This document shows positions 1-44,263 of a stretch of DNA of 64,000 nucleotides, in pieces. Numbering within the stretch: position 1 is the stretch's first letter; the number at the start of each line of letters is the position of its first letter. The notes under the pieces are model-generated. The model had not been told where the DNA came from. It saw nothing but the letters and a program-made list of their open reading frames with translations, and did not search any database. The position numbers and the translations under genes are program-made. Source of the stretch: Azolla caroliniana (Eukaryota; Plantae; Polypodiophyta). The stretch is taken from contig JBHGNT010000027.1 of assembly GCA_043228905.1 (NCBI GenBank), positions 429,058-493,057 on the forward strand, written 5' to 3'.

Positions 1-252
1 GCGGAACCACCTAACGAGTATTTTAAACAGCAAGCATGATGAACCGGCATGTTCATCAAACCAAACAGGTTCTTCATGCATGCATGAAGGCCTTCATGAT
101 GATGAAAACCGCTTCATTGGAATGTCACCGTCTCATTGACAACACGAATGATAACGAATTGACAATATGAATAGTCACGTTAGTTTCCCATTCTTAAGCA
201 TGGATTATTATACAATAATCTTCATTTGCTTTTTTACTGTTGACAACATGTA

Positions 253-326
253 GTGCGGGGGCAGGGTTTGAACCCGCAGTCTTCAGGTCATGAGCCTGAC
301 GAGTTGGCCATTTACTCCACCCCGCA
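253..326 (-). tRNA. trnfM: tRNA-fMet(CAU), native mitochondrial type
   Basis: Reverse complement GCGGGGTGGAGTAAATGGCCAACTCGTCAGGCT-CAT-GACCTGAAGACTGCGGGTTCAAACCCTGCCCCCGC folds as a cloverleaf and resembles plant mt trnfM. Confidence 0.9.
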
Positions 327-691
327 AGCAAGCAAGCAATTGATCTCTCTCTAGCGAATCGGAATTTATTTTAGAAAAAAAGAAGCCGGCCAACTCCTAT
401 TCAATCTACTTGTGCGGGGGAATGTTTGCTTGCCCGCAGACCCAACTCCACGTGTTATTGATCGCATTTCCCGCTGTCCGTCCAAATGAACTTGCACTAC
501 TGGTTATTAAAGCAGCATTGATGTTACCTTAAAAGCAGCAAGCGCGCAAGAAAAGAAAAGAAAAGAAGCAAAAACTAGCACTCCCTTACCGGCTAGGTCT
601 CTCCCGGCAGGCCACTGCCGCATTCCCAAAAAGCAATGTATGGGTTTCTTCCATCACGTCACTGTCGCATCGCTCGTGCTTCGCACTCGCT

Positions 692-6355: not shown

Positions 6356-6720
6356 GTTTCTTCTTTCTTGTATTCATAACTTTTTTCTATTGCTTTTTCG
6401 GCGAAAAGGCAAGCAAGTTTTACCTGACTTAACTGAAAAGCCTAGAAGTGTTTGTAATGCACAGCATCCTTAGCTCAGTCGGATAGAGCAACAACCTTCT
6501 AAGTTGAAGGTCACAGGTTCAAGTCCTGTAGGATGCGGAAAGTGCACATTAGATTATATACCTACGGAATGCTTTGCCCTTGTTCAGGGCGGGCTAGCGG
6601 GTTCTTCCTTTCAACCGAACCTGCATCATGCTTCGGTCACTTTTCGCTATATTGGTATATGGGATTACTTGCCCCTTTTCACTTCTTTTTAAACAGCCAT
6701 GATTATAAAGAACCAATCTC
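6356..6720 (+). repeat. trnR/leader cassette, also at 24038-24402 and (from the 6402 equivalent) at 35411
   Basis: Identical sequence at offsets 17682 and 29009. Confidence 0.9.
6464..6537 (+). tRNA. trnR: tRNA-Arg(UCU), copy 1
   Basis: GCATCCTTAGCTCAGTCGGATAGAGCAACAACCT-TCT-AAGTTGAAGGTCACAGGTTCAAGTCCTGTAGGATGCG. Confidence 0.93.
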
Positions 6721-16384: not shown

Positions 16385-16415
<31 letters not shown>

Positions 16416-18062: not shown

Positions 18063-18988
18063 ATAGAGTCGAGAGTCCACTTGCGCCTAGTAAGAGGGTT
18101 CATGCGGGCTCCGCATGAATGAACCGCTTCATCGGCTTGACGAGGGCAAAGCACAGGAAAGGCAGATGGGCATTTCCTATGTCCCATCCCCCTCTCGTAA
18201 CTAGTGCAGGCTACACAAGTGCTCTCCGAACCGGGCTGGATAGTCACCCATCACACGGCTCTCTAACTTGACGGGTGAAAGGCCGAGTGGGAACCCCGGA
18301 AATTACCCCTTTCCCCTTCGGCTCTCAGAGCGTGACAAGTGCATAGGCTCCTTCCCGTTTTCTACTTGGCATTCACCAAGTGCCGGTTCCGCCTTAGGAG
18401 GGTAGGCAGGTGGTATGGGCCCTCTGACTTCTTTCCGGGGCTTTCCTCCCATAAGATCTCGCCGTTGTTTCCTACATGGCTTGTCCAATTGTTGATCGAA
18501 CGCCCTGTGTTGGGATGTCATTTAGTGTTTTGTCCCCAGTAACATGGGTAACCTGCTCTATCCTTTCCTTTCCCTTCTGTGCAATGGGTGGGTCGAGGGA
18601 AGATCATTCGGCCCAATTAATCAAAACCCTCAGTAGGCATAGAGCGAGGCAGCGTGCGTTCGCGCTCCCCATTCGCCGAAATTAAGTGCCAATGGTTAGC
18701 TGTCGCCGGGTAGCCAGCCCCGAACTTCGATTCGCCAAGCTTTGCCCTCATCTTAATACCGAAAGCAGGCTCGCTCTATGCTGTTGAGTTACCCGTAGAC
18801 TTTTTGGTTCAAAATACGGGCGGGCCTTCGTTCGTTCCGCCAACAAACAAGTTCTTCGAACTTTAACCTCCTTGCCGCACATGCTTTGGTCCTCGCGTTC
18901 GTTACCGAGCAAGAGTAAGTGCAACGCCTTTGTACAGTACATAATTGAGCGCACGCAATTTTTCATGCAGGAACTAGACCGGCCGCCC
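18063..18988 (-). other. Group II intron rps3i249g2
   Basis: 5' GGGCGGCCG; domain V GAGCCGTGTGATGGGTGACTATCCAGCCCGGTTC; 3' AT; shares ~125 bp with the atp1 intron. Confidence 0.85.
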
Positions 18989-19505: not shown

Positions 19506-19539
<34 letters not shown>

Positions 19540-20671: not shown

Positions 20672-20745
20672 TCACTAAACCGACTTGAATCTGAATGGTA
20701 GTTCGGATTAAGTCTGACTGAAATCAGATTTACCTTTCATGCCGT
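20672..20745 (-). CDS. rps3: Ribosomal protein S3, exon 1 (ACG>AUG start)
   Basis: (M)A(R)KVN.ISVRLN.N..SDSS(W)FSD; 74 nt. Confidence 0.9.
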
Positions 20746-20751
20746 ATCCTA

Positions 20752-21012
20752 TTACCGTACCTTCTATCTCGGCTTGATCTTAGTTGTTCTCGAGGCCTTT
20801 CATATAGAAGCAAACTCTCCAAATTTATGACCAACCTTTTCTTTTGTAACCTTCAAACGAATAAAAGATCGCCCATTATGAATTTATGCATAGCAACCAT
20901 CAAATTTAGGCGAAATGAAAAGTCTACATGACCAAATTCTCCCTCTGATCTTTTTCGTCCTTCTCGACAAGCAAGCATCAACAAAAGGGCCTTTCCATAC
21001 AGATCATGCCAT
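20752..21012 (-). CDS. rps19: Ribosomal protein S19
   Basis: MA(R)SVWKGPFVDA, IWS.R, I.NG and KVGHKFGEFA. Confidence 0.93.
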
Positions 21013-21015
21013 AAA

Positions 21016-21666
21016 CTAATTTCTGCGTTTCCTCACTATTGCTCAAAATCCACATTTGGTGGGCTTTCCCCAAAGTAACACCAAAAGTCTACCTCCTTTC
21101 GTGCGTCCTTCGCCTCCTCCGTAAGAATAATCAACCAGATTCATAACAACACCTCAAACAATGGGGCGTCTGCCTAACCACCGGCTTTGCCCTGCTTTGC
21201 CAAGCTTACGTATGCCATGGTCGAGATTAGACACTATACCGATAGTAGCTCAGCATCAGAAATCTATAGGTTTGTGAACACCTAAGAGTGACCGCGCAAT
21301 ACATTATGTATTCTCTTTCTCAATTGTTTTAGCCTTGACCCCTGCAGCTCAAGCTGACCCTGCGCCTTAACCTGGCTTCCATTCGGTATTATGTACCCAT
21401 GCGCCCCTAGCTATATGGGCTGATGGTATGCGATTTCCCACCATTTAAAAATACGGATCAAGTACATATTTTTTATCGCTATAAGGGTCGGCGTAGTCTC
21501 CTCCAGGGCGTAGCCAGGAACCACTCTAACGGCTTCCCCACGGGACCTTCTCTTCTAACCACTTTCAGCCTTCATTCACTGTGTTGAACGAGGCTGAAGG
21601 TTTAGACCAATCATAATTCATCGCCATCCTGCCTGCTTCCAATTAATAACTAGCTAATATATGGGT
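21016..21666 (-). CDS. rpl2: Ribosomal protein L2, exon 2
   Basis: T.ILAS.(Q)LEAG.M.MN.DWSKP; C-terminal GRRP.V.GVVMN.VD...[11 protein letters not shown]...WGKPTK. Confidence 0.9.
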
Positions 21667-22132
21667 GTTAGCCTAAGCCGCACCATTACTGCTGGGGCTT
21701 GGCTCCCGAACCGTGCATGAGCTATAGGCCTCACACGGCTCTTCCTAAGAACTTAAATCCTCACTGGCTCTGCAATCCCTGATCAGAGAGCCTAAGCATT
21801 CAGTCGAGGCCTTGGGTTCTTCCGGGAATAATACGCTAGAATTCCCGCCCGTTCTGCCCACATCTCCAGCCATTCGTGGCTAAGGTCTTAAGTCTTCGAG
21901 TCAGCCTATTCTTTTTGAAGAATCCTGCTGCACTCACGGGCATACAGCCTGGCGGGCCTTCCGTTTCCGGAGCTTCATGGGCGTTGCCCCGTTCCTCAAT
22001 CAGATGTTTGGATGTGAGCTATACTCCGCGGGAAGCTCCACGAGCGTATGGCCTTGCCAATTGACCCCTTTTCTCGTATGACTGGGAACGCTGCTCAGTG
22101 ACAACCTCTCGATCGTCGCCGCCTTGGCCTCT

Positions 22133-22169
<37 letters not shown>

Positions 22170-22441
22170 CACCACGATAACAGGCCCTCGGTGTGGTCAG
22201 CACCGTCGATTTTCGGGCCACGAAGCTTACACTCATTCACATTGGTTCATCCTGCTACGGCTCGGGCCTTTCGCTCTTGCAACTTCGAAGGTGGCCATTC
22301 TTTTATCAAGGCCTGGAAGTCAGCCGTGCATCTCAGCCACTGGCGGGACTGGATACCCGCATCTGATCAAAGTTCTCGTTGCCTGTGAGAGCAACATGGG
22401 TCGCTTCGCGAAAGACATTGCTTAGGACCAACGGGTCGCAC
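21667..22441 (-). other. Group II intron rpl2i846g2
   Basis: 5' GTGCGACC; domain V GAGCCGTGTGAGGCCTATAGCTCATGCACGGTTC; ends CTAAC. Confidence 0.9.
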
Positions 22442-22903
22442 GAAAGGTGTACGATCTACTTTGCACGCCTTATCTCTCGGCCTTTCATCTGCCTCCAGCC
22501 GTCCCTCAAAGCTATGCTTAGGTTCGAGAATTCTCTTTTCTTCTTCGTTTTACCGAAAACTCTCCAGCGCTTTACGTTTGATTCTCCGCGCCCAGAGAAC
22601 GCTATGCGTTCTCCATCTTCGCGGCGCCCTCACTTTAGAAAGCGCTTTGCACTTTTCAGAACGTGGCACTCCTTCAATCCATCATACTGAAGCAATCCGG
22701 AAGGAACAATTTGGGTCATATTCGATCCTTTCCACAATGCCCAAAGACGAAGCGCTTCATTTCCAATCAATTCTTCACTACAATCACTTCGATCCACCTC
22801 CTCAGTAAAAAACCGTGATACGCCCTGATGGATTCCTCCCGGCGGACCTCTTGTTACTACTGGTCAACTTTCTCAGTGCTTTTTCTCTCCAGTAACCTCT
22901 CAT
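22442..22903 (-). CDS. rpl2: Ribosomal protein L2, exon 1
   Basis: SAGRN.SGRITVF.(R)GGGSK(R)L(Q)(R)RID and GIVERIEYDPN. Confidence 0.9.
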
Positions 22904-23677
22904 GGATTCTTTGGTTTCTTCCCTTCACTCAAAGCATCCGTGACATCAAAGAAAGGTGGTACCATGGCAGGCATGGGGTGTACCCAGTGTCAACGTTATC
23001 AATCATATATACGATGATTGATCGCTTCGCGCATAGAATATACCATATAGCTGATGTTACCCATGAGTGAACAGTGGGCTGGCGTGGTTAAGTGGGCCTT
23101 CGGCCCGTGGTTGGTTTTTCCCCTTCCTTTTAATCAACTGTATATATAGGTGCTGTGATCCCGAAAGCTAGGCACATTGCATTATGTTTGTATATGTGGC
23201 CACTATTCCATACGATCCAAAGTGTTGCCTGCTCAAAGCAGCAGCTTGTTAGCATAAACCAAATAAGAGCTCATTTCAACAGCAGCAGAATTCTGCACAG
23301 CCAAACAGATAATGCGATCCTGTCCTGTTGCATGCATAACAATACAGCATGGTGGAAAGGGTAGCTATCATCCTCTCTCCCCCCGGAAGCCGAGCGGGGG
23401 AAGCGCTATGTGCCGATGAACCAACCGGTTCATCAAACAGGTTCTTCATGCATGCATGAAGGCCTTCATGATGATGAAAACCGCTTCTTTTCTTTTCTTC
23501 GGCCGGCTTCTTCCGCCTTTTTGTCCGCGGAAGCAGCGCATGGTGCTTCTCCGCCGGGCCGGGCCGGGCCGGGCCGGCCGTTATGCTTTCGATTTGATCT
23601 CACTATGTCCGGATTTGCTTGTGCAAACTATAAGCGGTGTAATTCCGCTGTATTTTTCTTCTGACCTGACTTCCTGA

Positions 23678-23986
23678 CTAGAGTTTGACAATCAACTCTA
23701 AACCAGTTTAATAATGAAATGGAATTTTCAATTAAACTCCGAGTGGGTGGTGGAATTTCAACCGAAGCGACTTTTCGCACAATTTATGTGTTTCCGTTTC
23801 TATGACCGGCAATTATTTATGTATTCCCATTTCAGATTGTTCTCTAGACTTTTTATCAATATAAAGTAATCACAGCACTGTATACGAGATTCATTTTCTA
23901 GGCAACCCAATCTAGCATGTGTTATGCGGATGCCCTGTTGGTGGTTTCTCGAGAGATTTAATCATAATGCATACCTTGGCAGTCGT
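23678..23986 (-). CDS. rps10: Ribosomal protein S10 (ACG>AUG start, intronless)
   Basis: (M)TAKVCI.IKS, IGLP.K(R)..YTVL(R)..IDKKSREQ.EM.I.K(Q). Confidence 0.85.
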
Positions 23987-24145
23987 TCCGAAGTAAAGGG
24001 TGGTTTTCTCTTTTTGTTGATTATGCCACTATCATTAGTTTCTTCTTTCTTGTATTCATAACTTTTTTCTATTGCTTTTTCGGCGAAAAGGCAAGCAAGT
24101 TTTACCTGACTTAACTGAAAAGCCTAGAAGTGTTTGTAATGCACA

Positions 24146-29061: not shown

Positions 29062-29456
29062 ACCGTCCACCCAGTGCCACTACCCACCTCTACTGAGGCT
29101 AAACTTGATGAAAGCAACAGCAAAGATGACGACAACCGAAATAGAATATTATTTAATCATAGAAATGCCGTGTCAGGTGCACCTGTAAGAATCAGAACGA
29201 ACCGGTTACCGAATCCACCTGTCATCGCCAGCGTAACCGGAAGGGATGTCGTTAAAGAAGCGTAAGCGATTATTAACACATTATAAGGTTAATGATTTCC
29301 ACCAGGAATTTAATGGCCGGGTTATGCTGATTCCATACAGATTAGTACTAAGAGGCGTGTGCCCATTACTCCAGCCGTGACACCAAAGATTGAGTGTAGA
29401 GTACCTATATCTTTGTAGTTCGTAGAAAATAGCCATCTTTACACGAAACGGTTTGT
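29062..29456 (-). CDS. cox1: Cytochrome c oxidase subunit 1, exon 1 (no ATG/ACG at the homologous start; possible upstream start at 29738)
   Basis: (Q)RWLFSTN.KDIGTL, AGVMGT, GGN.(Q).YNV, GGFGN.FV..L.GAPD.AF and [11 protein letters not shown]. Confidence 0.93.
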
Positions 29457-30381
29457 ACATGAAAGAGTCTTGGCTACTATAATCAATGTAAGGGAGATGA
29501 ATCCTATTGCAAATACAATCGGAATGAAGAAATCCTAAAATCCAATAATCAGTTCCACAACCGAAGAGACTTCTAGATCTTTCAGGATTTCTAGGCCACC
29601 CGAAAGATCGGGTAGTGTATTCTACGACAGATTGAGGAGCACCTGCGGGAACAACTCTTCGTTGTTATTTTAAAGAGTTGCGATGTCCTCGTGCAATTCG
29701 GTCTATAATCTTTCTAAGCTGTTTATGACTATGGGCATGTCTTATCCAATCTGTTTCTTTTCCTCGGTGCTTTATACCTAGGGCAGTCTCCTGCATTCAT
29801 GGCAGTTCCTATGGTTGCAAAAACAACAAGGAGTCGGTTCCCGTATATACCCGGCTTTTCTTGTATGCTTTCGGCAAGCAAAAAAAACGCTAGCGGGCCT
29901 ACCACGCTTCGCGCCTGCGTCTTTGCCAGACAGTATTTGCCAGTAGTGCCATCCCACCCGACCTGAGGATTTAGTTTGTCCCTTGCTAAAATATCTTTGA
30001 AGAACTTGTACTGATTTTCCAGGTCGGTCCTCGCGAGCGGATATGGGCCCTAGAGGATGGTGTAGAAACTCTCTGCCCGTAAGTCGTGCCTGAAAGCGGT
30101 TCATCCGGGTGAAGCCGGCGGCGAGGAATTGACTGGTGCTGCGTTCACTGCTTGCTCGAAGGCCCGTATCCGCGCAGGCAGTAAGCAACAGATTGGTTCG
30201 TAACAAAAACAGCTTAGAAAAGAAAAAGAATAAAGTTATTTCCTATTAAACTAGTGATTGTAAAGAAAAAAATCCTTCACAACGCCAAGGTATTTTAGCA
30301 AGACACTACATAAGACTTTCGCCCTGGATGATATATGGGTTCTCATGAGAAAGAATGGTCGGTTTCCTTTTAATGAAGTAA

Positions 30382-30503
30382 AATCCACACCTTGACGCCC
30401 GGAATCCCGTAACGAGTGAATGTTTATTAGGAACCGAACTGATGGGCTTTCCCTAAAGTAACACCAAAAGTCTACCTCCTTTCGTGCGTCCTTCGCCTCC
30501 TCC
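30382..30503 (-). pseudogene. Mosaic of short rps3 3' and rpl2 3' fragments (also at 49183-49304)
   Basis: AATCCACACCTTGACGCCCGG..AACGAGTGAAT matches 17166-17205; GGGCTTTCCC..CCTTCGCCTCCTCC matches 21061-21120. Confidence 0.8.
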
Positions 30504-31762
30504 TAAATAAATTCACTTTCTCTAAAGTAGCCCAATGGATTGTTAACAAGTTCTACGATATACTTATCTTCAAGCCAACCAAGTACTTTAGCACCTTATT
30601 GCATACATGTTCGAACTCAACTCCAGGTCGCGTATAATCACTCTCATTGCAATCAACCATGGCTACTCCAATATTAATTAATTTTGGCTTTCTTTCTATA
30701 AACTTTCGTTCCAGCCAGGGAAACGGTGAAGGATAGTGATTTACGGCATGACTGTACAGTTTAGCCGTCACCACTTGTAATTTGAGTCGATAGCCAAACA
30801 CGGATTATGCCCTCTACGCAGACAGAGAACCGCCCAACCTAGCTGCGCAAATTGCTTGCTTGCTTGCTTGCTTGCTTGCCCCCTTCTTGCGGATGCGGAA
30901 GAACTTGCTTGCTGCTAAGTTTTATTAGCGCAGGTGAAGGCCTTTCCGCTGTCTGTGAGGCGGATAACGGGCAATCTCACTCATTGCGCTGTTTTATTGA
31001 CTTCGCCACGGCACCACTTTTTTGGCGGATAAACGGCCTTCATGCTGCCGTTAGTCGAGGCGGCCCGATGAACCAGTGCAGCAGAAAAGAATTTCGGTTA
31101 TAGAATGGCCGGTCTCTTTCACTTGCTTCTGATCAAAGGCCGGCAGAGAAGTAGCCGTACAGATAGCATAGGCTGCGGCCTATTCTTGCAGAGAAAACAA
31201 CTTCGAGAATGATAACCCGTAGGTACCGGTGGGTTCGATCAGTCCCTGGAGTTCGCTAGGTGATATCTATACGGCAAGGAGGATATGAAGCTATCCCTAC
31301 GGAATCCAATCCCTGTGGTCCTAGATCGGTCCCGAAGCACTAGTCCGGTACCTGCTGCAATCAGTCCCTATGGTACTTGCTGCAACCAGTCCCGAACCCA
31401 AAGGTTTGCTACGCTGCCGCTGTAGGCATAGTTGGTACCGATGTTCACTGAGATTGGGAATCCCCGCTTCGTGCTGATCGTATCGTATTCTCTTCGCTTA
31501 TTGCAGCTGTGGTAATCGAGGCTTTGCTTTGTATTCTCGAAGTACGAACGCTAGCTGATCGCTTCGTATCCTTTCAACCGTTGAGGAGCTGCAACTGCTT
31601 GGCGTTGTCTATGGCCATGATTGTATCGCGGTTGGTTCGGGCGGGAATCAATCAAATCGCCACTTTTCACGCGCCCGCCGGTTCATCCCGGAGGAACCGC
31701 ACAGGAGTAATTCAGACTGTTTCTCTAGTCAATTTCGCGTGACCGTAAGACGCAATTCTGCA

Positions 31763-31834
31763 AGCGGAAAAAGGGACTCGAACCCTCAACTCCAGCCTTG
31801 GCAAGGCTATACTCTACCATTAAGCTATTTCCGC
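31763..31834 (-). tRNA. trnG: tRNA-Gly(GCC), copy 1
   Basis: GCGGAAATAGCTTAATGGTAGAGTATAGCCTT-GCC-AAGGCTGGAGTTGAGGGTTCGAGTCCCTTTTTCCGCT. Confidence 0.95.
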
Positions 31835-31973
31835 CAGCGGAACCAGAGCCGAGTGCGGTTCTTCCCCCGTAGAGAAAGCGCTATAGCTTTCGGGGGAAGA
31901 ACCGCAATGAAGACTTCATTGCGGTTCCCTTGGAACTATTGACTTGAGACTTCGATGACTCATCGATAGGTCC

Positions 31974-32032
31974 ATGCCCGGAGAGATTCGAACTATCCCG
32001 GATTCGAAGTTTGGTGCTCGAGCTACAGGCAC
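31974..32032 (-). pseudogene. Internally deleted trnR-like remnant (also ~50775-50833)
   Basis: GTGCCTGTAGCTCGAGCACCAAACT-TCG-AATCCGGGATAGTTCGAATCTCTCCGGGCATG keeps the acceptor and T arms but lacks the D loop. Confidence 0.4.
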
Positions 32033-32577
32033 AAGTTGACCTTACAGACCGAACAGAGGCTAGTAAAATCTAACGCTTAGCTTAGAAGGTCGTAAGATCA
32101 GACCAGACTTCGCCCGGAAAACGAACGTAAAGCATTGAAAGAGCGTTGCTTAGTGGCTGGCTTTGGCCGCCTTTACGACCCAAAGACGAATCTCCGGGTC
32201 CCAGCTTATTATCCTGCAATGTTACGGATTGACTGTTACTGGTGCTAGGTAAGGAGTTTCAGTTTTGGGCGTCACTTTCGAAATATCTCGAGTAATGGGT
32301 TCATGTGAGTGCATGAACAATCCAACTACTCTACTAGGCTGCTTCCCGCCCTGTTTCGCAGCTTGCTCCCCTTCGGCGGCACGGCACGGCACGGCACGGC
32401 ACGGCACGGCACGGCACGCACGCACCTGTCTTCCCGCATTCCGTCCGCTGAGCGCAAAGCGTCGACAAAGAAAGCAGCTACCTTTTCATTATTATACTGT
32501 AATCCCAGCGCAAACAAAAAAACTGCCATGAATATCGAGAACGGAACAAGAAGCCACAACGAAATCAAGTCAAGTCT

Positions 32578-32877
32578 ACGGAAGCTTAATCCGTTTGTTC
32601 TTCGTAAACAATTGGATACAAAGTCAGTACTAACCCATAAGGCTCTGTTTCAGATTCAAAACTAGGGTTCAGCTATGAGATTTGACTCTAGGTCACGCCT
32701 TCGGTTTGTGTTTTCCGCTTGAAACATAATATCACTCGTTGTACCGGAACGGATCCCTGAAAAGTTACTTAATCCGCTGTTAGCGTCAAAAATTGTAAAC
32801 CCCCTGAAGTTCATAAAGGAAGAGGTATAAAATATTGAAATGAAATTATACGTAGAAAACAAGGAGAAAAGAAACAA
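32578..32877 (+). CDS. rpl6: Ribosomal protein L6 (ACG start; predicted CAA>UAA stop)
   Basis: (M)EA, IGYK.STNP(Q)GS, KLGFS.EI(R)L(Q)VT, CTG.D..KVT(Q), CKPPEV.KGRGI.Y(R)NEII.RKQG. Confidence 0.9.
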
Positions 32878-32880
32878 ATC

Positions 32881-33243
32881 GCGTCATATATTCCAGGAAC
32901 CAAATCAGTTTCCAATAAATAAGTCAGACTTGCCTCAACCTAAATCTCCGGAACTGGACCCAAAAAAGCCACTTGGGTTTGTGATTAATCAGGTCCCGGC
33001 GATAACACTAAGGTTAGTAATCTGACTCGGCACTAAATTGACCAGATTAGCATAATAGTACGTTGAAACAATTTCCTAGTTGATTCGGAATTAAAGAGAG
33101 AAATTTAGTAATATATCAAATGATTAATTAATATCAGCCGTTACCGCGGATTCCGTCACAAAGCAGGATTGCCATTACGTGGTTAATGAACCTACAGCAA
33201 TGTTAAGATCTGTCGCAAGTCAAGAAAAGTTTCAATCAATCAA
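32881..33243 (+). CDS. rps13: Ribosomal protein S13 (start position is GCG, possibly edited to GUG; predicted CAA stop)
   Basis: SYI.GT...NK(Q)VRLA.T(Q)I.G.GPKKA, ELKREI, YRGFRH.AGLPLRG(Q)(R)T..N.K.CRK. Confidence 0.9.
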
Positions 33244-33341
33244 CGAAAGAAGAATAATTCGTTTTTCATTCACAAAAATGAGAGAAGGCAAGACGCCAGG
33301 AAGAAAACGAAACCGAAGGAATAGAAATGAAGAATACAATT

Positions 33342-33773
33342 ATGTAAAAGCAGCCTTCTGAACACTAGTAATAGTAGCCGCGCCGCTAACAGAAATGGGG
33401 AAAACACCACTAAAAGCCAAGAAAGCACCACGGTATTGCCCATACTTAACCAACTTTTAGTAATACTTTCATTATCATAATAAATTGCAAGGGAGATGAA
33501 AGAACAGGGTCCTCCTCAGGTTGTTCAAGAGGGTTTAAGGGTTTCCGTCGCTCGGACAAGTATGCAGCTTAAGCAACTGCGGAACGTGTCGCGTAAGCTG
33601 CCACTTAACCCGAAATTAGGTCAGTTGAAGTGAAAATAAAAGGAATTGGTCTTGTAAGAAAGGGATTTTCGCCGAAAAGTTCAAAAGAGGGAGGTCCTGT
33701 TACTATCAGAATTCACGACGTAATCCCAATGCTACATAATGGATGCTGACCCCCTAAAAAACGTCGTGTCTAA
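33342..33773 (+). CDS. rps11: Ribosomal protein S11 (start at 33342 or 33327)
   Basis: HGIAH.(Q).TFSNT, GFKG.RRS..YAA(Q)ATAE, VEVKIKGIG and I.DV.P..HNGC(R)PPKKRRV*. Confidence 0.9.
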
Positions 33774-34354
33774 ATACCACCATAGAGCTATTTGTCTCTA
33801 CTCACCAACGTCAGAAGGTTTGGATTGGTCCTACAGCCCAGCAGGTCATGGAAGGCTTGGCTCGAGCAAGGCGAAGGAATAAACCCGAATAGAGCAGCGA
33901 AGCGGGGAGATGGAATGGAAAAAGTCGACTCAAATTAGAATAATTGCAGTTTAGTTAATACCTTACTCGTCTATTCGTTCATCCAATTTCTCCATACGAC
34001 AAATATCCATTTTTTTTTGCCAATCGATCGAAAGAGTCGGCTCCGCGAAAGGTAGTTGCACTGCGGGGCTCACTCTGGAATTTGATCCTATGATTTAGAG
34101 CTATGTGGATGCCCTCCCTCCGCGTAGTCCCTCACCTTTCAGTTGTATATATCTATTTCTCTCCGTCTCTGCATAGCTACGGATACACGGCTTTAGCGCT
34201 TCATTCACCCAGTCTATTCTGTCAAAACTTACTTTCTTTATAATGCAAACCAACACTGGGGGAAGGTCCGATCCCTCCCCTCTATATCAATGACATGGTT
34301 CACCTCGTCGTGAGGTTACTTCCCTTTCCCATCTCTTTCTTGCTAGGAACTGCC

Positions 34355-34790
34355 ATGAATGCAGGAGACTGCCCTGGGTATAAAGTGCCGAGGAAAGGGA
34401 TTCGACGGAAGAGAAAGGGAACGAGATTGTTTAAAGCTAGAGCAACGGAATAACCATCTACTATCTCGGAAGAAAGAATTACCAACTATCACACCAAATT
34501 GCCAGTGGATGAGATCGGTTGAGTGGTATCGGTTGGGGATGGAATTGCACGTGTTTATGGATCGAACAAGATTCAAGCAGGAGAAATGGTAGAATTCGCC
34601 AGCGGTGTGAAAGGAATGGCTTCGAATTCTGAGAATGAGAATGTAGGAATTGTTATATCCGGTAGTGATACCGCCATTAAAGAAGGAGATATGGTCAAGC
34701 GCACTGGATCTATTGTGGACGTTCTTGTAGGAAAGGCCATGCCGGGTTGTGTAGTTGATGCGTTAGGAGTACTCATTGATGGAAAAGGTG
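34355..34790 (+). CDS. atp1: ATP synthase subunit alpha, exon 1 only (remainder not in window)
   Basis: VDEIG(R)[31 protein letters not shown]...[20 protein letters not shown]...DGKG, followed by an intron at position 361. Confidence 0.93.
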
Positions 34791-35410
34791 GGGCGGCCGT
34801 TAGATCATCTGCGGTCGAAAAAGGTTGCATACAGGCATGAGACTAACCAGAACCCGCGAAGGGAGGCCGAGACCATAGCATGTCGCAAAAGAAAGCACGA
34901 TTGAAGGCAAAGCGGACGAATGAAAATCATCGTGCAGCCCGGTAGTTTGGTGAAAGATGAGGCCGAAAGCAGCAAATCGGAGTCTTTTTCGGGTGACCAT
35001 GCCCTATTCGTTCGTTCGACGTGTTGCCAGATAGACGCGGATATGCTCCCTGCCTGCTATAGGCACATTATGGTCAGGCCCGATTGAGTGCCACTTCTCC
35101 CGCCCGTAAACGAAAGTTTACAGCAAGCATGAGAGCGGATTACCTATCTATTCTATTGGGGACGGAAGACTGAACGACATCCCGGCAAGCCAAGCAAAGT
35201 GGGACCTTTCAACTCTTATCTTATTATGGTCCCAACCATCCGCAGGTAAAACCGGCGAGATCTTCGGCGGGAGGAAAGCCCCGGAAAGAAGTCAGAGGGC
35301 CCATACCACCTGCCTACCCTCCTAAGGCGGAACCGGCACTTGGTGAATGCCAAGTAGAAAACGGGAAGGAGCCTATGCATTTGTCATGCCCGGAGTTCGA
35401 AACAGAATAA
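34791..35410 (+). other. 5' portion (domain I to start of domain IV) of group II intron atp1i361g2; no domain V/VI follows
   Basis: Starts GGGCGGCCG; 35253-35386 is nearly identical to rps3i249g2; then an abrupt junction into repeat R1. Confidence 0.8.
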
Positions 35411-35472
35411 CGAAAAGGCAAGCAAGTTTTACCTGACTTAACTGAAAAGCCTAGAAGTGTTTGTAATGCACA

Positions 35473-35546
35473 GCATCCTTAGCTCAGTCGGATAGAGCAA
35501 CAACCTTCTAAGTTGAAGGTCACAGGTTCAAGTCCTGTAGGATGCG
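35473..35546 (+). tRNA. trnR: tRNA-Arg(UCU), copy 3
   Basis: Identical to 6464-6537. Confidence 0.93.
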
Positions 35547-35880
35547 GAAAGTGCACATTAGATTATATACCTACGGAATGCTTTGCCCTTGTTCAGGGCG
35601 GGCTAGCGGGTTCTTCCTTTCAACCGAACCTGCATCATGCTTCGGTCACTTTTCGCTATATTGGTATATGGGATTACTTGCCCCTTTTCACTTCTTTTTA
35701 AACAGCCATGATTATAAAGAACCAATCTCAGATTTTTATGAAACCCTGCCTGAACTGAACTTTATCATGGCTTGCAGTCCACTTGAATAATTTGCTACTG
35801 TTCTATCAGTTTTCAAACGGATACATAGATTTTGAACATCGAAGAAAGAAAGCATATTATGCGCCGCTCTACCGTATGAA

Positions 35881-36558
35881 ATGGAAAAAGGAAAGAAAGA
35901 GTATTATTCCAAAAAGGAAAAGAAAGTCATTTTTTAAAGATTACCGAATACAAGCGCACATTCGGGCTATTAGGGACCCCCAACTCCATATTATTAAAGA
36001 TATTTATACGGATTTAGACGCGGAAGGGCTATTATTGATTTGGAAAAAACACTTTTATTCTTGAAGATTGCTTGTAATGCGATTGGATCTATCATTCGTA
36101 AGGAGGGCCATTTATTGTTGGTGAATATTGATCTTTTGTACGATGACACAATGAAAAAAATGGCGAGAAGGACCAATTAAAGTCATATCAATTCCAAATG
36201 GATTGGTGGTTTCTTAATCAATTGGGAACATATGAAACATGAAGAACGCTTTAAGTATTCATCCACGTGGCGGCATTCTAGTCTACGTTTTTTAAAGATG
36301 TAAAGATATTTCGAAGGACTGATAACATGCTAAATTTCAGATAGTTTAGTTATACCGAATGCACGTAAAGATTTCATAGCTATATTTGAAGCTAATTGAT
36401 CATGAATATTTATTGCATTCCTGGTGGATTCTACTCTCCTAGAGGGATTACATAGGTTAGTTATTTATCTCATTCTGGTAAATAATGATTCCGTGTGGTT
36501 CACAAATCCATTTTGCTAATTGGTCACGAAAATAGTCATTCATTCGAAAAAGGCTTGA
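35881..36558 (+). CDS. rps2: Ribosomal protein S2, copy 2 (alternative nad9-derived start at 35767)
   Basis: Identical to 6872-7549. Confidence 0.85.
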
Positions 36559-37572
36559 GAACCCAGCAGAAAAGCCAGTAAAATAAGGAAAATTCAAAAA
36601 AGAAAAAAGAATACCCACTAGAAAGGATGCTAGTTGCTGTCTCTCACCTCTTCAGAGCGGCACCAGAAATCAAGCAAGAACCAGTATTATTCGTCACCTT
36701 ACTATGCGTCCCTTTGCCATTCTTTGCGATGGCGAAAGCGGCTCCAGATGAGAAAAAGAGCCCAGCACAGCCCTGGAATTTGGGCTTGATACACTGGGAG
36801 GTTATAAACAGTCACACCCGCAGAGAGCGGCTGGGCGGTAAGTTGGAGGGAGTTTTCTGCAACAACTTTAACTTTCGCAGCTAACAGAAATCTCCTCTGT
36901 CCTAGAAGATGACGTTAGATCAAACCTATGCTCTCAGGCGCTTCTAACGTCCTACAAAACCGAAATCAAGTCAACAACGCCGCAAGCAATTAGTGACCTC
37001 AGTTCAGCTAGCAGGAAATATGATACTGGGATAGGGTAGCAGGCACTATCGCGAGGCGCTCCCCTATCCCAATGGGACTACAGGAAAGTCCGCAATGCAA
37101 TATTGTGGAGAATGAATTAACCCCATTAAGGCAACCACGAAAGCATACCGCTTACGGTTTGATGAGTCTGATCTCGAGCGAGAATGAATTATCATTTTGT
37201 TCTGAGAATTCATCTGTTGGCTCAGCTCCTGGGGATGTAGAGGGCTAAAAGTAACAACAACTTGGTTATGGAAAATTGTCTTCAATTAAGTCATTTTTTA
37301 TCCTATACGTCGGGGCGGGGTCCGCCCCCTCCCACGCCAATTGAACCAGTTAAAGGGAAGACAAGATCGACCCTCAACCATGCTGCTTTTACGGCATGCT
37401 CTTCCTTTCTTCCTGTGCTTGTTCTCTTCAGTCTAAGCTACGTAACTCCTCCCTTCAGTCCAAACCTTCGTCCCAATTCGTAAGCCTTCGCTTGACCGCA
37501 GTCCCTCGGTAGAAATGGGTTTGGTTTTCCCATAGCCATGATCTGTAGCCATCCTTTGTCCTATTTGTCAGT

Positions 37573-37643
37573 TGCGGATAACGGGAGTCGAACCCATATC
37601 CTCTGCTTGGAAGGCAGATAATCTACCGTTAATCTATATCCGC
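37573..37643 (-). tRNA. trnG: tRNA-Gly(UCC), copy 2
   Basis: Identical to 8564-8634. Confidence 0.93.
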
Positions 37644-38054
37644 CTAAGTTTCGTTTCCGAAAGGAGGGGTATTATGAAGAAAGAGATCATTCCTATAATA
37701 CAAATCGGCCGAAGCGCGGGGCCTTCTATGCGCGCGCAAAGACTTTGCCCCGCTCAAGCACCTAGTAGAATGCGAGTGATGGATCATTTGTGTTCAATTC
37801 GTTTCATATACGATAATTCATGGAACGCTATCGATGAAAATTTTCTGTTCGTATCTCTCCAATTCAAGAGCAATCAAGCCAAACTGCAGAGCCACCATTC
37901 GACCCTGCCTCTACAGGTACAAAGAAGGATGTAGCGGGAAGGGAAAAGGGCCTAGAAAGAAAGTCTTATGTCCTTGCAGCAAGCAAGTCGCAGCAATGCA
38001 ATGAAGGCCTTCGCTTTGTCGTCGTCTTTCGATCTATACGTTTTTCGAACTCCA

Positions 38055-38087
<33 letters not shown>

Positions 38088-38438
38088 GCTTTAGGCTTTA
38101 GCGAGGTTCATGAAATCTCGAAGAAAGCAGCAAGCAGCTGGGGTCTTTGAATAGTTAACGTCTCACAGGTCATGAGGCGGCTCGAAAGTCAAAGAATGTA
38201 TATGATACTAACCGTACATTTTCCCTTCCCGCGCTGGTAGCTCAACTGTTAACCGCTTCATCCGCGATTGGTCTACGGTTTCAATCCCTTCATGCGCTTC
38301 ATGAAGAAGCGCTTCCTCCTCGCGCATAGCGCTTCATCCGGCCGGGCCGGGCCGGGCCGGGCCGGGCCGGCATTTACCCAACTTGGAATTAACTTCATCA
38401 AGTCAGTACAGTTAACGAAAGGACGCTGGCGCTTCCCT

Positions 38439-38660
38439 TTGAGATTCCCTCCAGCCACAGGTTCCCCTACGACTACCATGTTACGACTTCACCCCAGTCA
38501 CTGACCCAACCGTGATATGCGCCAAGAAGACCACCAATACCAAAATGGGCCACACTCAACTAGGCATGGAACACTTTAGTAATGGGTGATCTCTGGTCGA
38601 TGCTTCGGGCGAAACCAATTCCCAGGGTGTGACGGGCGGTGTGTACGGGGCCCGAGTACA

Positions 38661-38710
<50 letters not shown>

Positions 38711-39146
38711 TTCTCGAGTTGCAGAGAACAATCCGAACTGAGGCAATCTTTCTGGATTCGCTCCGCCTTACGGCCCTGCTTCCTATTGTAATTGCCATTG
38801 TAGCACGTGTGTAGCCCAGCCCATAAGGGCCATGCGGACTTGACGTCATCCTCACCTTCCTCCATAGTAGAACTACGGGCAGTCTCTTGTGAGTGCAACA
38901 TCGGCACAGAGGGAGTGTCATCAATCCTGGCTAACCGCTGACTGAACACAGATTCATGGGCAGGTACCGATGAAGCGGCTCACTTACCACCGGCTCGCTC
39001 GTCGGAACCTCAAGTTCGTCGGAAGCCAGCCCATGTTCTATGTTCCTGCTTGCCGAGGGTGAATGATGACATTGATCCTCTGGGAGCAGCATATCTTAGC
39101 AACACAAAACGAGGGTTTCGCTCGTTATAGGAGTTAACCAAAAACG

Positions 39147-39185
<39 letters not shown>

Positions 39186-39292
39186 ATGAATTTTCGTTTC
39201 ATCCCGTTAAGGACAAGCACACCGGTTCATATGTCAAGTGTTCATACGTCAAGTGTTCATATGTCAAGGGCTGGTAAGGTTTTGCGCGTTGT

Positions 39293-39325
<33 letters not shown>

Positions 39326-39445
39326 AGGCCCCCGTCAATTCCTTTGAGTTTCAGTCTTGCGACCGTACTCCCCAGGCGGAGTGTTTAACGCGTTAGCTGG
39401 GCCCCCGATCCGCGGACCAAGGACGAACACTCATCGTTTACGGCA

Positions 39446-39481
<36 letters not shown>

Positions 39482-39721
39482 AGCTTTCGCACCTCAGCGT
39501 CAGTAGAGACCCAGAAAGCTGCCTTCGCTACTTCGGCGTTCCTTCGTATATCTCCGGATTTTATCCCTACACACGAAATTCCACTCCCCTCTGTCCCACT
39601 CGAGTAAATTGGTTTTGAAAGCATTCCGCCAGTTGAGCTGGCGCCTTTGACTTTCAACCTGATTCACTGCCTACGTGCCCTTTACGCCCAGTCATTCCGA
39701 ATAACACTTGCCCCCCCCGTC

Positions 39722-39757
<36 letters not shown>

Positions 39758-39913
39758 CTTCTTCGAGTCTTGTCATAATCGCGTACTCGACGAAAGAGCT
39801 TTACAAGCGGCATTGCCCTTCCTCGCGTTAGCGACGTTTTTCACTCACTCACGCGATATTGCTGGATCGGGCTTTCGCCCATTGTCCGATATTCCCCACT
39901 GCTGCCTCCCTAC

Positions 39914-39951
<38 letters not shown>

Positions 39952-40059
39952 GTCCGAAAAGATCAGCTAAGCATCTGCGGCTTGGTCAGCCTTTACCCAA
40001 CCAACTACCTAATACTACGCAGGCTCATCAAACAGCGCTTTTTAGCTTTATCGAAAAGC

Positions 40060-40095
<36 letters not shown>

Positions 40096-40268
40096 AGCTG
40101 CTTTCGTTTCTTTGGGATTCGGCCCAAACTGTTTGGCAGATTCCCACGCGTTACGCACCCGTTCGCCACTTTGTCTTCAACTGTTCTATAGACGAAAACA
40201 ACGTTCGACTTGCATGTGTTAAGCATATCGCTAGCGTTCATTCTGAGCCAGGATCAAACTCGGTTTTT
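38439..40268 (-). rRNA. rrn18: Mitochondrial 18S rRNA, copy 2
   Basis: Matches 9430-11260 except for one deleted nucleotide near 38560. Confidence 0.97.
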
Positions 40269-40999
40269 TGGTCAATTTCTGCCATACGAGGCAGGTTGAT
40301 GAATTCATGTGCAATATTTGAATTTTGGTGTGACTCTTGGTTGGAGAAGGCCACACCACAGTTGGTCTCTTCTCCATAAGCCGGACCGCCAACGTCAAGG
40401 CGAGATCACATTGGTCCAGTCCCCGCATAGCCAGTGGAAGGGTGAGGTGCATCCACTCAGATAGCATGGGGAGGTCGAATGACTGCGGCCACGTCAATCC
40501 GCTTCTTTTCTTTTCTTGTTGGGCCGCTAGCAATTGTCTAGCTTCTGCGTTTAGTTTTTTTTTTCGCTCTCGAACGGTTACGATGAACCGGTGCATATGG
40601 CCGGAGAACCAACCTTTGGTTCGAGATGGATTCGGCCTTCCCTTACGTCATGTTCATGGCCTTGCATTCCAATGATCACTGCGCTTCACTTGGCTCCAGA
40701 GAGCAAGAAGGCCTAGCTAGAACAACAATCTCAGTGACAAAATTGACCTCGGCTAGAAGGTTACGTAAGTGAATTTCAGTCGGGCCAGCAGCAGTGTTCA
40801 CATGTTCATAGATGCTCCAATGAAAAAGCATAAACATCACGAAGCCCGTCTAAAGTTTAGTTTTTTTCTTCGCTGAAAAGCAGCAGCTCTCGATACACTG
40901 GTGCATATGGCCGGAGAACCAACCTTTGGTTCGAGATGGATTCGGCCGAAGGGAGTGAGAACCGGCGTGTTGGCATTAACAATCATGCTCTCATCTTTC

Positions 41000-41533
41000 G
41001 AATCAGTCGTTACGGGGTCAATGAGCTAGCTCGTAGCTACGAGAGAGATTCCCTAAGAACAAGGTGGTTCTGGAATACGAGATAAAGCAACGAGGACAGT
41101 GGGAACAAGACCTTTTGGTGGTGGGACCCTGGACTGTTTAAGTGTTGGTCCCGGGGCACCTATCCTGGCGCATTCTTGCTTGCTTGCTTGCTTGCTGAAC
41201 CCGGGTTGGCGTTAGCTAACCGCCTACCAAACTTGACCTGCTTTCATCTTGGGGCCTGACCCGCTTTATTCCTCGTCGTTGAGGGCGTGCTTGCTTGCTT
41301 GCTTGCTTGCTTGCTGGGGCACTCGACCGCAATAAAGGGAGAGAAGCTTTCACGACTTCCCACGGTGTGGCCATTACTCTCAAAGGGTAAGCTGGTTTCA
41401 CCGTTATGAGCCAGTTATTGAAAAAGCGTTCGCACGCTTGTGGGGCGAAAGGCCAGAGGAGGACTCCTTTTCCCTCTTCTTGTGGTCCTTCGGACTTCAA
41501 CAAAGGAACGGCGGAGTCGTAGCTCTTTGATTC
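41000..41533 (-). other. 5' part of a group I intron in rrnL (rrnLi825g1-like), copy 1; left end approximate
   Basis: rRNA homology stops after GGCTAGGGGT; candidate P1 AGGGGU/GUUCCU; P/Q/R-like elements ATAACGGTGAAAC, CACACCGTGGGAAG and CCCGTAACGACTGA; no 3' exon follows. Confidence 0.65.
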
Positions 41534-42543
41534 ACCCCTAGCCACGAGTCATCCCCGTATTTTGCCACATACGTGAGTTCGGTCCTCCAAGGCCTCTGTG
41601 GAGAGCTCGATTCAACCTGCTCGTGGCTAGATCAATCGGTTTCGGGTCAAATAGAAACAACGCCGAAGATTCAACCTCGTTGCGCCTACACCTAATGGCT
41701 TAAGCCGCTGTTCCCATTCACTCGCTGACCCATTATGCAAAAGGTACGCCGTTAGGGTGGAAAGTGCTAAAGCGAGAGCCGACAACGCGAAGCTTCGCTC
41801 AAGGGTTCGCGTATGCGAACATTAGTGGCTTTGCCTCCGAAAGCTACAGCGCTTTCTCAGCTTCGCGTATGCGTTCCATCGAACATTAGTGGCTTTGCCG
41901 CATTTTCTCAGCTTCGCTCTTCCGACTGATAGTTTGCATCGGATTTCAGGTTTTCTATTGCACTCCCGGCATACGGCGGGGTCTTTTCACTTTTCCCTCA
42001 CGGTACTTGTGGTACGCTATCGGTCATTGAGGAATACTTAGGCGCGGGGGTGGTCCCCCTTAGTCACGTAAAGCGATCATTATTCAAACACGGTATCCGC
42101 GTTTTGTAATGGTAATCAAACTTGCCAGGAAAGATCTACGGGGCTATCACCTTCTTTGGCCAGATCTTCCAACCTTTTCAGAATTCCTTGAGGAAGGGTT
42201 CCCACCCTTCCCTCTACTGCAAGTTCTCCCCCGCACGGGGCCAGGGAAAGCGGCCCTTCTGGGCTGGGGCCCCTTCCCTTTTCTTTGCCTAATCCGCTTT
42301 CGCTCGCCGCTACTAACGGAGTCTCAGTTGATTTCCTTTCCTTTAGCTACAATGATGTTTCAGTTCGCTAAGTTTCTCAAGTCCGAGGCAGAGCCGCAGC
42401 ACACGGCATGCCCGGCAAGCTTGGATACGGTTTCCCGATTGGAAACCCATGGATCACAGACGGTATCTCCCCATGGCCTTTCGCCTTTGGAAGCGTCCTT
42501 CCCTCTCAATGCCCAGGCATCCATCCAATGCATTCTTTTCGAT
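41534..42543 (-). rRNA. rrn26: Mitochondrial large-subunit (26S) rRNA, 5' segment only, copy 1
   Basis: GAATGCATTGGATGGATGCC, GAACTGAAACATC, CCGTTAGTAGCGGCGAGCGAAA, CAAGTACCGTGAGGGAAA, CGTACCTTTTGCATAATGGGTCAGCGAG and GGGGATGACT.GTGGCTAGGGGT. Confidence 0.93.
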
Positions 42544-42621
42544 GCAGTAGGAGTTGAACCTACCGAACACCGTACAAAATCTTAATGAGTGTTCTGCGAT
42601 CGCCACTCAACCTGTGACTGC
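42543..42621 (-). pseudogene. Degenerate tRNA-Met(CAU)-like element abutting the rrnL 5' end (also 60616-60694)
   Basis: GCAGTCACAGGTTGAGTGGCGATC...CACT-CAT-...GTAGG-TTCAACT-CCTAC-TGCA: intact T arm, shortened acceptor 3' strand. Confidence 0.5.
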
Positions 42622-42843
42622 TTAAAACCGAGACAAAAAGAAGCCCGCATAGATTATTATACAATAATCTTCGGACGTTTGTAAAATGCGGAAGAAGCGC
42701 GGAAAGAATTGGTCGAGTACTTGGACAGAGGATTCATTGTTTCGACGAAAACGTCTACCAAATGACCCTGCATCCTCTGTTTTTTCCTTTACGCTCTTGA
42801 GTTCTCTTTCCGTGCTGTGCGATACGAAGTTTGTACAATCCGC

Positions 42844-42881
<38 letters not shown>

Positions 42882-43166
42882 AAGGGCTTCGTCCTTCCTC
42901 CTTTCTTAGCGTCTCGTTTAACTAAACACTTTAGATTTCCCTGACAAGTTCCCTAGCTCTCTCGAGCGTAAGAGTTGAGGAACAGATTTTCCGATAATGC
43001 ATGCCAGCCAGGGATTTACGCATCATTGGTATTGTGTGTTTACCGTTCTAATCTGTCTTCACATCCATAGCTTGCTTTTTTGCGTTGTCGTACGCCTTTT
43101 CATTGTTTCTGGCTGATATCAGATTCGCATCTGACCTTTAGGCAATCGCATATACGATTTGAAAGG

Positions 43167-43284
43167 GTCCGGGCTGTCGAACCACGTCTCCCGAAAATTA
43201 TCAGTACATATGGCAGAAAACGCTTTTCACATATCGAGGTCGGAATGGGATCGGGTGTTTCACGTCTTACAAAGATGCCCGGAC
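43167..43284 (-). rRNA. rrn5: Mitochondrial 5S rRNA, copy 1
   Basis: CCGGGCA...AGACGTGAAACACCCGATCCCATTCCGACCTCGATATGTG...CCATATGTACTGA...TTCGGGAGAC...GCCCGG. Confidence 0.93.
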
Positions 43285-43346
43285 GGAACGAAACGCTTGA
43301 TTAATGAACAAAAGAGTGCTAACGACAAAAGCGGCGGGCGCCGAAC

Positions 43347-43383
<37 letters not shown>

Positions 43384-43835
43384 GGAAAGTGCAAATACAG
43401 CTGGTACTTAGCCTTCGATCGCTACCAACCTCACAAGGATGTCATCAATTCGCAGGTGGTTATTAAGTAAAAAGTGTAATATAAATGGCTACCAAACCAA
43501 AGTTCTTCTTTTGAACTTTCAAGAAGGCCTGAATATTCATGGATTATTATACGATAATCTTTAATGCGGCTCAGATTGCGGAAAGAATTGAATGCTGGAA
43601 TTTCGAAATTCCGTTGGTAAAATTCAGAAGGATCATGCAAGAAGGCAATATCATCTTCTGGCCATAATCTGCGAATCCAGCAAAGCAAAGCAAAGCAGCA
43701 CTTTTCTTTTCACTTTAAACCGAGCCGGCGGCAATCTTGATGAATCACTGGCAAGAAGATGCTTTGCACTTTTCTTTCCACTTTAAAGCAGCAATCTTTT
43801 CACTCGGAAATGGCAAAAGAGCTTGGAAGAAGAAT

Positions 43836-43906
43836 AGGCTAGGGACGGAGTCGAACCGTCATTCCAGGATTTGCAGTCCAATACATTGCCATTATGTTAC
43901 CCAGCC
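43836..43906 (-). tRNA. trnC: tRNA-Cys(GCA), copy 2
   Basis: Identical to 12160-12230. Confidence 0.93.
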
Positions 43907-44112
43907 AGCAGAACGTTTTTCCCGCTTAAATGAAGAGAGGCGGGACTCTCATTTAAGGGGGGTGACCTTAGGCCACCCTTTGAAATAATCTAAAGCCTTA
44001 CAATCAATTTCTGCGATGCCATAAAATGTGAACCAACGACAACGATTTTGGGCAAAATAAGAATTAGTGATTGAAAAAGACCCGCAGCTTGCTTGTGAAG
44101 CCGACCAGCGTA

Positions 44113-44263
44113 CTGCCAACACGACTTGTTTATGCCTATTAAAGAACCTTTTAATGCTAATTCACAGAAAACTATACGAAGCATACAAAATAACTAATAT
44201 ACGAAACGGAAGCGACCGATGGAAATACGTCAGTTTCTTACTCATGTAAATAAACTATTTCTT
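44113..44263 (-). pseudogene. rps14: 5'-truncated rps14 exon 2 fragment directly downstream of rps1
   Basis: Identical to 12437-12587; junction at 44263. Confidence 0.8.

Follow-up and report, generated by a model that had tools for sequence, protein, structure and literature searches.

The window, which is the whole stretch of 64,000 nucleotides of Azolla caroliniana DNA analysed here, is mitochondrial DNA of the fern type, containing two copies of rrnS, fragments of rrnL, 13 tRNA genes, and several matches to domain V of group II introns. Self-comparison revealed that near-identical repeated blocks form a patchwork along the window, as is expected when an assembler walks alternative arrangements of a recombining mitogenome. 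Within this patchwork lie exon 1 of atp1, the 5' part of its group II intron atp1i361g2, and a 41-nt repeat inside intron domain IV, termed R41, after which the sequence runs into a block with trnR(UCU), trnG(UCC), and rrnS (Table 1). The arms that meet at R41 are referred to as a (atp1 exon 1 and the 5' part of the intron), b1 and b2 (two copies of a 46-nt unit in different contexts), c (the trnR-rrnS block), and d (a continuation absent from the window, which leads to atp1 exon 2). The rrnL gene is represented by 5' fragments only, each present twice (41489-42532 and 59562-60605; Rfam positions 16-564 and 573-1301); a trans-spliced group I intron in rrnL has been described for Haplopteris.

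Table 1. Features of the window that bear on the atp1 locus and on the R41 repeat.
Feature	Position	Strand	Basis or remark
Sequence directly downstream of atp1 exon 2 in cis contigs	1..387	-	present in the window without exon 2
b1 copy: 46-nt b unit and R41, then arm c	6356..6442	+	
b2 copy: 46-nt b unit and R41, then 297 nt of arm c	24038..24124	+	
Further copies of R41	6402-6442 and 24084-24124		upstream of trnR(UCU)
rps3i249g2, complete cis paralogue used as yardstick	18063..18988	-	domain V from 18260
Leader common to the cox1 upstream region	34344..34396	+	53 bp; BLAST match 94% over 53 nt
cox1-upstream copies of the 53-bp leader	29759-29811 and 48560-48612	-	
atp1 exon 1	34421..34790	+	tblastn, translation, editing, spliced RNA
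5' 661 nt of atp1i361g2	34791..35451	+	domains I-III and first part of domain IV
Domain II/III stretch near-identical to rps3i249g2	35244..35386	+	counterpart 18464-18324, minus strand
Start of lineage-specific domain IV	35387..35410	+	alignment of L004 with L026-L028 and rps3i249g2
R41, 41-nt repeat inside domain IV	35411..35451	+	recombination site
Right arm c, non-intron	35452..40548	+	part of the 5139-bp repeat at 6402-11540
Content of arm c	trnR(UCU) 35473-35546; promoter-like motif 35701-35713		also trnG(UCC), rrnS
Repeat pair	6402-11540 = 35411-40548		5139 bp, 99.98%; trnR, trnG, rrnS inside
Repeat pair	29438-32812 = 48239-51613		
Repeat pair	40306-44263 = 58379-62336		

Exon 1 was recognised by tblastn with Escherichia coli AtpA (L001), of which only residues 9-119 align, at window positions 34457-34789. 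Its reading frame opens with an ACG codon at 34421-34423 and contains an in-frame TAA and an in-frame TGA. RNA covering positions 33600-36600 was examined in one raw sequencing run (X24) and two contig sets (X15 and X16), together with one DNA contig set (X1). In the RNA, the ACG is converted to AUG by editing at 34422 (74 of 78 reads in one mate orientation and 7 of 7 in the other), and both stop codons are removed by U-to-C editing, TAA becoming CAA at 34451 and TGA becoming CGA at 34520. Including these three, about 16 sites are edited in exon 1, each at close to 100%. The RNA runs carry small indels relative to the window, namely TTCG after 35006 and AAG after 35190 in a CAAG repeat, and X24 alone has single-base deletions at 35388 and 35412, indicating that the RNA stems from related but non-identical genotypes other than the assembled plant. 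Since RNA and assembly differ in genotype, the apparent editing sites should be checked, and a comparison with DNA from the same plant as the RNA would be desirable.

The preliminary description had placed the start of the gene at an ATG at 34355. This triplet lies within the promoter-like motif AACTGCCATGAAT (34348-34360), which is itself part of a leader also found upstream of cox1, and the real start is the edited ACG. The edges of the leader coincide with loose ends at 34344 and 34396, and RNA depth climbs here. In total, 10 copies of the motif AACWGCCATGAWT were counted in the window, compared with 0.32 expected, and one of them precedes the edited atp1 start by about 60 nt, where RNA depth climbs.

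RNA depth over exon 1 is about ten times that over the intron, which stands at about 10% of the exon. Exon 1 ends at 34790 (GGT G), and beyond this position 52 X24 reads, along with one contig each in X15 and X16, read A-L-S-A-V-E-R-R-R-V, the conserved start of atp1 exon 2; at the junction, the RNA links exon 1 to CTTTGAGCG..., which yields G-A-L-S-A-V-E-R-R-R-V. Exon 1 is thus joined in RNA to the conserved start of exon 2, demonstrating that a correctly spliced atp1 mRNA exists. The intron sits after the first codon base following ...IDGKG, which is position 361 in Marchantia numbering. Ligated exons alone are uninformative as to whether splicing proceeds in cis or in trans. Two database matches were set aside as comparisons: L003, found as P0001, might have passed for a spliced mRNA and is actually DNA of a different fern containing only exon 1 and 5' intron, while L002 (P0004) is a plant atp1 that lacks atp1i361g2 and was not useful.

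The intron begins at 34791 with GGGCGGCC, which is also the start of rps3i249g2, and its RNA is edited at 35049, 35182, and 35183. Alignment of the two introns extends from about 35077 to about 35386-35395, with 73% identity over 320 nt, and includes a stretch of 115 nt (35265-35379) that is 100% identical; in the cis atp1 intron described below, domain V is 90.7% identical to that of rps3i249g2. The paralogy of the two introns is therefore visible from the 3' part of domain I to the start of domain IV, and again in domain V. The preliminary description had reported this alignment, an intact exon 1, and an intact 5' part of the intron, all of which were borne out; exon 1 and the intron part are, moreover, expressed and heavily edited. 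It had also placed domain V of the rps3 intron about 80 nt beyond the end of the alignment; domain V does follow, with a spacing of about 70 nt, and the domain IV before it is about 70 nt long.

In the window, the remainder of the atp1 gene does not follow. No domain V was detected on the plus strand downstream of exon 1 with Rfam models, at either gathering or E-value thresholds, and exon 2 is absent from the window according to tblastn with E. coli AtpA and a blank scan for conserved alpha-subunit motifs, the two exons being searched for separately rather than with a joined exon 1 and exon 2 model. These searches agree with the earlier statement that the window holds no atp1 domain V/VI or exon 2.

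Two sets of observations concern sequence that the two introns have in common. A loose end of X24 reads at 35386 (20 reads) was considered as the true continuation of the atp1 intron and rejected, because the sequence beyond it resembles domain IV of rps3i249g2 with three substitutions, because X24 represents a diverged genotype, and because other X24 reads cross from a into R41. These reads most likely derive from the rps3 intron and were placed on the common 115-nt stretch. Separately, in four metaSPAdes contigs (L007, L008, L009, and L012), atp1 exon 1 and the 5' part of its intron are continued by the 3' part of rps3i249g2 and the rps3 exon. Their switch point lies within the 115-nt identical stretch, and MEGAHIT contigs of k=119 or k=141, judging by their names, lack the switch. 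Either the paralogous introns have genuinely recombined, or these contigs are chimeras produced at small k.

The DNA contig set X1 shows a depth of 68.6 and 74.7 in the intron interior (34907-35379), compared with 12.9 in exon 1, a ratio of about 5, and one of its contigs links the tail of the b arm and CTCTCCC to position 34907. The excess may reflect an additional, higher-copy partial copy of the intron or inflation by the (CAAG)n microsatellite at about 35184-35195.

The continuation of the intron was reached through contigs from X15, X16, and X1, which track the window up to 35451 and then enter sequence absent from it, namely arm d. A search of metagenome contigs with the first 30 nt of d retrieved L004, L005, and L006. 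Positions 1-5516 of L004 equal window positions 29932-35451, the sole difference being a 4-nt indel at 30852-30855, and the intron part at L004 4856-5516 shows zero differences from the window. Past R41, L004 continues with about 150 nt of further domain IV, then domain V/VI at 5667-5750 (RF00029, 49.9 bits against a gathering score of 40), which ends exactly at the splice site, and then exon 2 from 5751, with AtpA residues 129-471 encoded at 5777-6799. The first 30 nt of this exon 2 equal the sequence that follows 34790 in the spliced RNA, except for one U-to-C edit (TGA to CGA). L004 is thus a complete cis atp1 gene with an intron of 895 nt. The same contig was recovered as L010, and further cis copies were found in L013, L011, and L016; altogether, at least four independent assemblies match exon 1 and the 5' intron of the window at 98.3-99.9%. 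All of these cis copies come from samples other than the assembled individual.

The stretch that immediately follows exon 2 in the cis contigs recurs at the very beginning of the window, on the opposite strand: L004 7249-7312 equals window 387-324 at 100%, and L013 4434-4827 equals window 387-1 at 95.5%. Both outer flanks of the block formed by R41, d, and exon 2 are therefore in the window, with the block itself absent. This flanking sequence adjoins trnM(CAU) in the window. In a related fern, L027 carries at 4006-6417, about 2 kb downstream of atp1, an ORF of 803 amino acids with a mitovirus RNA polymerase domain (PF05919), which is either a mitovirus-derived insert or a co-assembled mitovirus.

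Comparison with the cis contigs locates the break precisely. They part from the window exactly at 35452, and positions 35387-35451 are native domain IV of the intron of this species. The preliminary description, which had the intron severed in domain IV, was right about the domain; the position is 35451/35452 rather than 35410/35411. It had also seen the sequence enter the trnR repeat, and from 35411 onward the window does equal the 5139-bp repeat copy listed in Table 1. The intron and the region upstream of trnR share only the 41 nt at 35411-35451, and the copies of R41 next to a, b1, and b2 and in L004 are 100% identical.

Domain IV of this intron is peculiar to the lineage. Related ferns (L026-L028), whose introns are about 89% identical, have atp1i361g2 in cis; their domain IV measures about 60 nt and is near-identical to that of rps3i249g2. 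Unlike these, the Azolla intron has from 35387 onward an unrelated sequence of about 205 nt, including the recombination-active R41, in place of the rps3i-like hairpin. The domain IV of the cis gene folds more stably than shuffled controls (z = -3.5), and in this predicted fold the boundary between R41 and d falls in the 5' strand of an internal hairpin.

The junctions at R41 were surveyed in public assemblies. The ORF of window exon 1 (P0121) occurs in 61 blocks, of which ten places were inspected. In 4 of the ten listed, a leads through R41 into d (L010, L013, L011, and L016); L013 is a metaSPAdes contig, whereas L011 and L016 were assembled with MEGAHIT, and their names point to k=119 and k=141, values that exceed the 41 nt of the repeat. 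The junction of the window, a-R41-c, appears in 1 of the ten listed, L015, an independent contig of k=119 by its name. Four others are the contigs that switch into the rps3 intron, and the remaining one (L014) ends early.

A 58-aa ORF inside arm d likewise occurs in 61 blocks of public assemblies, and the longest ten places were inspected. In 9 of these ten, d is preceded by the 46-nt b unit and R41 rather than by the atp1 intron. The context of b1 (window 6305-6401) leads through R41 into d and then atp1 exon 2 in L018, L019, L020, L022, and L024, and that of b2 (window up to 24083) does so in L017, L021, L023, and L025; L023 equals window 14158-24124 at 99.8% before entering d. With L005, the b-R41-d junction is found in ten contigs, while in L006 the flank to the left of R41-d is diverged. 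Three contigs carry, about 6-7 kb before the b1-R41-d junction, ORFs with a plasmid-type DNA polymerase B domain (PF03175; L018 3269-3640, L022 2361-3625, and L024 3133-3504), which are remnants of a linear mitochondrial plasmid.

All six combinations of the left arms (a, b1, and b2) with the right arms (c and d) were found, several of them backed by k larger than the repeat, and the window itself contains a-c, b1-c, and b2-c only. The census favours long contigs, and its counts are not stoichiometries. An identical repeat is present in both partner loci, and parental as well as reciprocal junctions occur with flanks that are otherwise identical.

RNA depths around R41 indicate where transcripts of the a arm go. 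In X16, depth is about 183 on a, about 126 on b, about 309 on R41, about 80 on c, and about 235 on d; the sums a+b and c+d agree within 2% and are close to the depth of R41. As c is far below a, d must receive at least about 105 of the 183 units of the a arm as cis precursor, an argument that assumes no RNA ends inside R41, the Logan RNA contigs having been built at k=31, which is shorter than 41 nt and gives no strict phasing across the repeat. An X15 RNA contig covers 35269-35451 and then 282 nt of d, with no coverage of c, and plus-strand depth on arm c beyond R41 is approximately zero in X24 and X15. Most RNA of the 5' intron is therefore indicated to run into the cis continuation. Of the arms that would give half-intron transcripts, a is transcribed, and b is represented in X16 by a 46-nt RNA contig, again at k=31 and without phasing across R41.

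Taken together, the window probably represents one recombination isoform (a-R41-c) of a fern mitogenome with multiple arrangements. The ancestral short domain IV of atp1i361g2 would have been replaced by about 205 nt in this species, and the replacement carries R41, a second location of which is 22 nt before trnR(UCU). Right arms would then be exchanged by homologous recombination at R41. The functional gene would be a-R41-d, with exon 1, the 895-nt intron, and exon 2; the form in the window joins exon 1 and 661 nt of intron to the trnR-rrnS block, and elsewhere the b1 and b2 arms lead into the 3' intron part and exon 2. The junctions, the cis gene, the exact splicing, and the RNA editing are direct observations, and recombination, rather than another process, is inferred to have made the junctions. 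Ordinary cis-splicing of the cis form is the most likely source of mature atp1 mRNA, and the a-c copy most likely yields only dead-end RNA of exon 1 and the 5' intron. The cis form presumably also exists in the assembled individual. The preliminary description had offered a recombination isoform or pseudo-copy as its fallback, and R41 within domain IV, the full set of arm combinations, and the independent junction in L015 favour that fallback.

Some observations weigh against the isoform reading. All three copies of R41 in the window lead to c, and the cis form was seen only in other samples. Additionally, b-R41-d precedes d in 9 of the ten longest places, so the split forms are abundant and not rare sublimons. 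Short repeats usually recombine rarely in seed-plant mitochondria.

A rival reading is a mixed state, in which the cis form and the split forms would occur together at similar levels and, besides cis-splicing, facultative trans-splicing of the split transcripts would add some mature mRNA. Here, the lineage-specific insert in domain IV would have brought in the recombination-active R41, and both halves of the split gene would give RNA that is trans-spliced in part. The assembly of all junction types across about 25 samples would fit comparable stoichiometries, and the a, b, and d arms are all covered by RNA in X16. On the other hand, almost no plus-strand RNA lies on arm c beyond R41 in X24, and the cis form alone accounts for the mRNA. 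A mixed state is accordingly considered unlikely; if true, it would be a living intermediate of the cis-to-trans transition and the first case of a trans-splicing group II intron in ferns.

An assembly artefact is highly improbable. It would require that the long-read assembler misjoined the atp1 intron to the trnR block at R41, or that the window is a nuclear copy of mitochondrial DNA, and the patchwork of repeated blocks is indeed typical of an assembler walking alternative paths through a mitochondrial graph. The a-R41-c junction also exists, however, in the independent contig L015, at a k-mer length (by its name) at which single k-mers span the repeat. Against a nuclear copy, the flanks match the cis gene over 5.5 kb except for one 4-nt indel, and the RNA differs mainly at C/U editing sites.

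Obligate trans-splicing, with only a-R41-c and b-R41-d in the sequenced plant and the half-introns associating through domain IV and tertiary contacts, is the least probable of the readings: although the break is in domain IV, where such introns are usually split, c follows all three R41 copies of the window, b-R41-d is common among long contigs, spliced mRNA exists, and a trnR 22 nt after R41 could allow RNase P to define the 3' end of the 5' half, it is opposed by the cis gene in several independent assemblies, by the X16 depths, which demand that most a-arm RNA enter d, by the a-R41-d contig of X15, by the lack of a promoter-like motif in the b arms next to R41, and by the fact that both split halves carry R41 in the same sense, which offers no complementarity for pairing in trans. 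The halves of a trans-spliced gene are found only at separate loci, but here they are joined in L004/L010, L013, L011, and L016, in samples other than the assembled individual. The cis-to-trans transition, or trans-spliced atp1, proposed in the preliminary description is therefore unsupported, given these cis loci and an RNA flow that runs mostly into d. What that description had named as decisive against it was a continuous cis copy at normal read depth elsewhere in the genome; a cis locus was found only in other samples, from this plant or one very close to it.

Trans-splicing mitochondrial group II introns of seed plants and lycophytes (nad1, nad2, nad5, and others) are split in domain IV. 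The Azolla locus resembles them in that, on some DNA molecules, exon 1 and the 5' intron lie apart from the 3' intron and exon 2 with a break in domain IV. It differs in that a cis copy exists and carries the RNA flow, and the split is not fixed.

The intron itself belongs to a known family. Zumkeller, Knoop and Knie (2016, PMC5010907) described the fern-specific intron atp1i361g2 together with its fern paralogue rps3i249g2, both in cis and variable mainly in domain IV, and the Azolla intron agrees with the published atp1i361g2 in its insertion site, its 5' end GGGCGG, domains II/III and V near-identical to those of rps3i249g2, and editing within the intron. In the mitogenome of Haplopteris ensiformis, 32 recombination breakpoints have been described, along with a repeat, R180, inside the group II intron nad2i709g2 and coexisting pseudogene copies, including one of atp1 (PMC10027690). 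Both mitogenomes have a short repeat borne by an intron and common to an unrelated locus, gene fragments beside an intact gene, and, in this fern probably, coexisting isoforms. In Haplopteris, however, evidence for recombination across R180 is very weak, whereas here the recombined forms are often assembled, in many samples and in the genome assembly, and the repeat is only 41 nt long. Mitogenomes of Salviniales have been suspected of similar recombining behaviour (PMC12548569). The case is of a known kind, that of repeat-mediated isoforms, and is distinguished by the shortness of the repeat, the frequency of the recombined forms, and the lineage-specific replacement of domain IV.

Papers of 2022-2023 report that ferns have no known trans-splicing group II intron (PMC10027690; bioRxiv 10.1101/2022.12.23.521604), and a genuine one, obligate splicing of atp1 in trans included, would be the first in a fern. 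The present analysis removes a tempting false positive: trans-splicing is needless for atp1, as an intact gene exists in near-identical DNA of other samples. For annotation, copies of atp1 in this assembly with exon 1 only or exon 2 only should not be read as a trans-spliced gene without phasing at the level of reads. R41 stands as a mapped recombination hub of 41 nt with three left and two right arms, which helps to explain the redundant patchwork of the assembly. By replacing domain IV, this fern lineage would have made the intron prone to recombination, the sort of starting point presumed for the evolution of trans-splicing introns.
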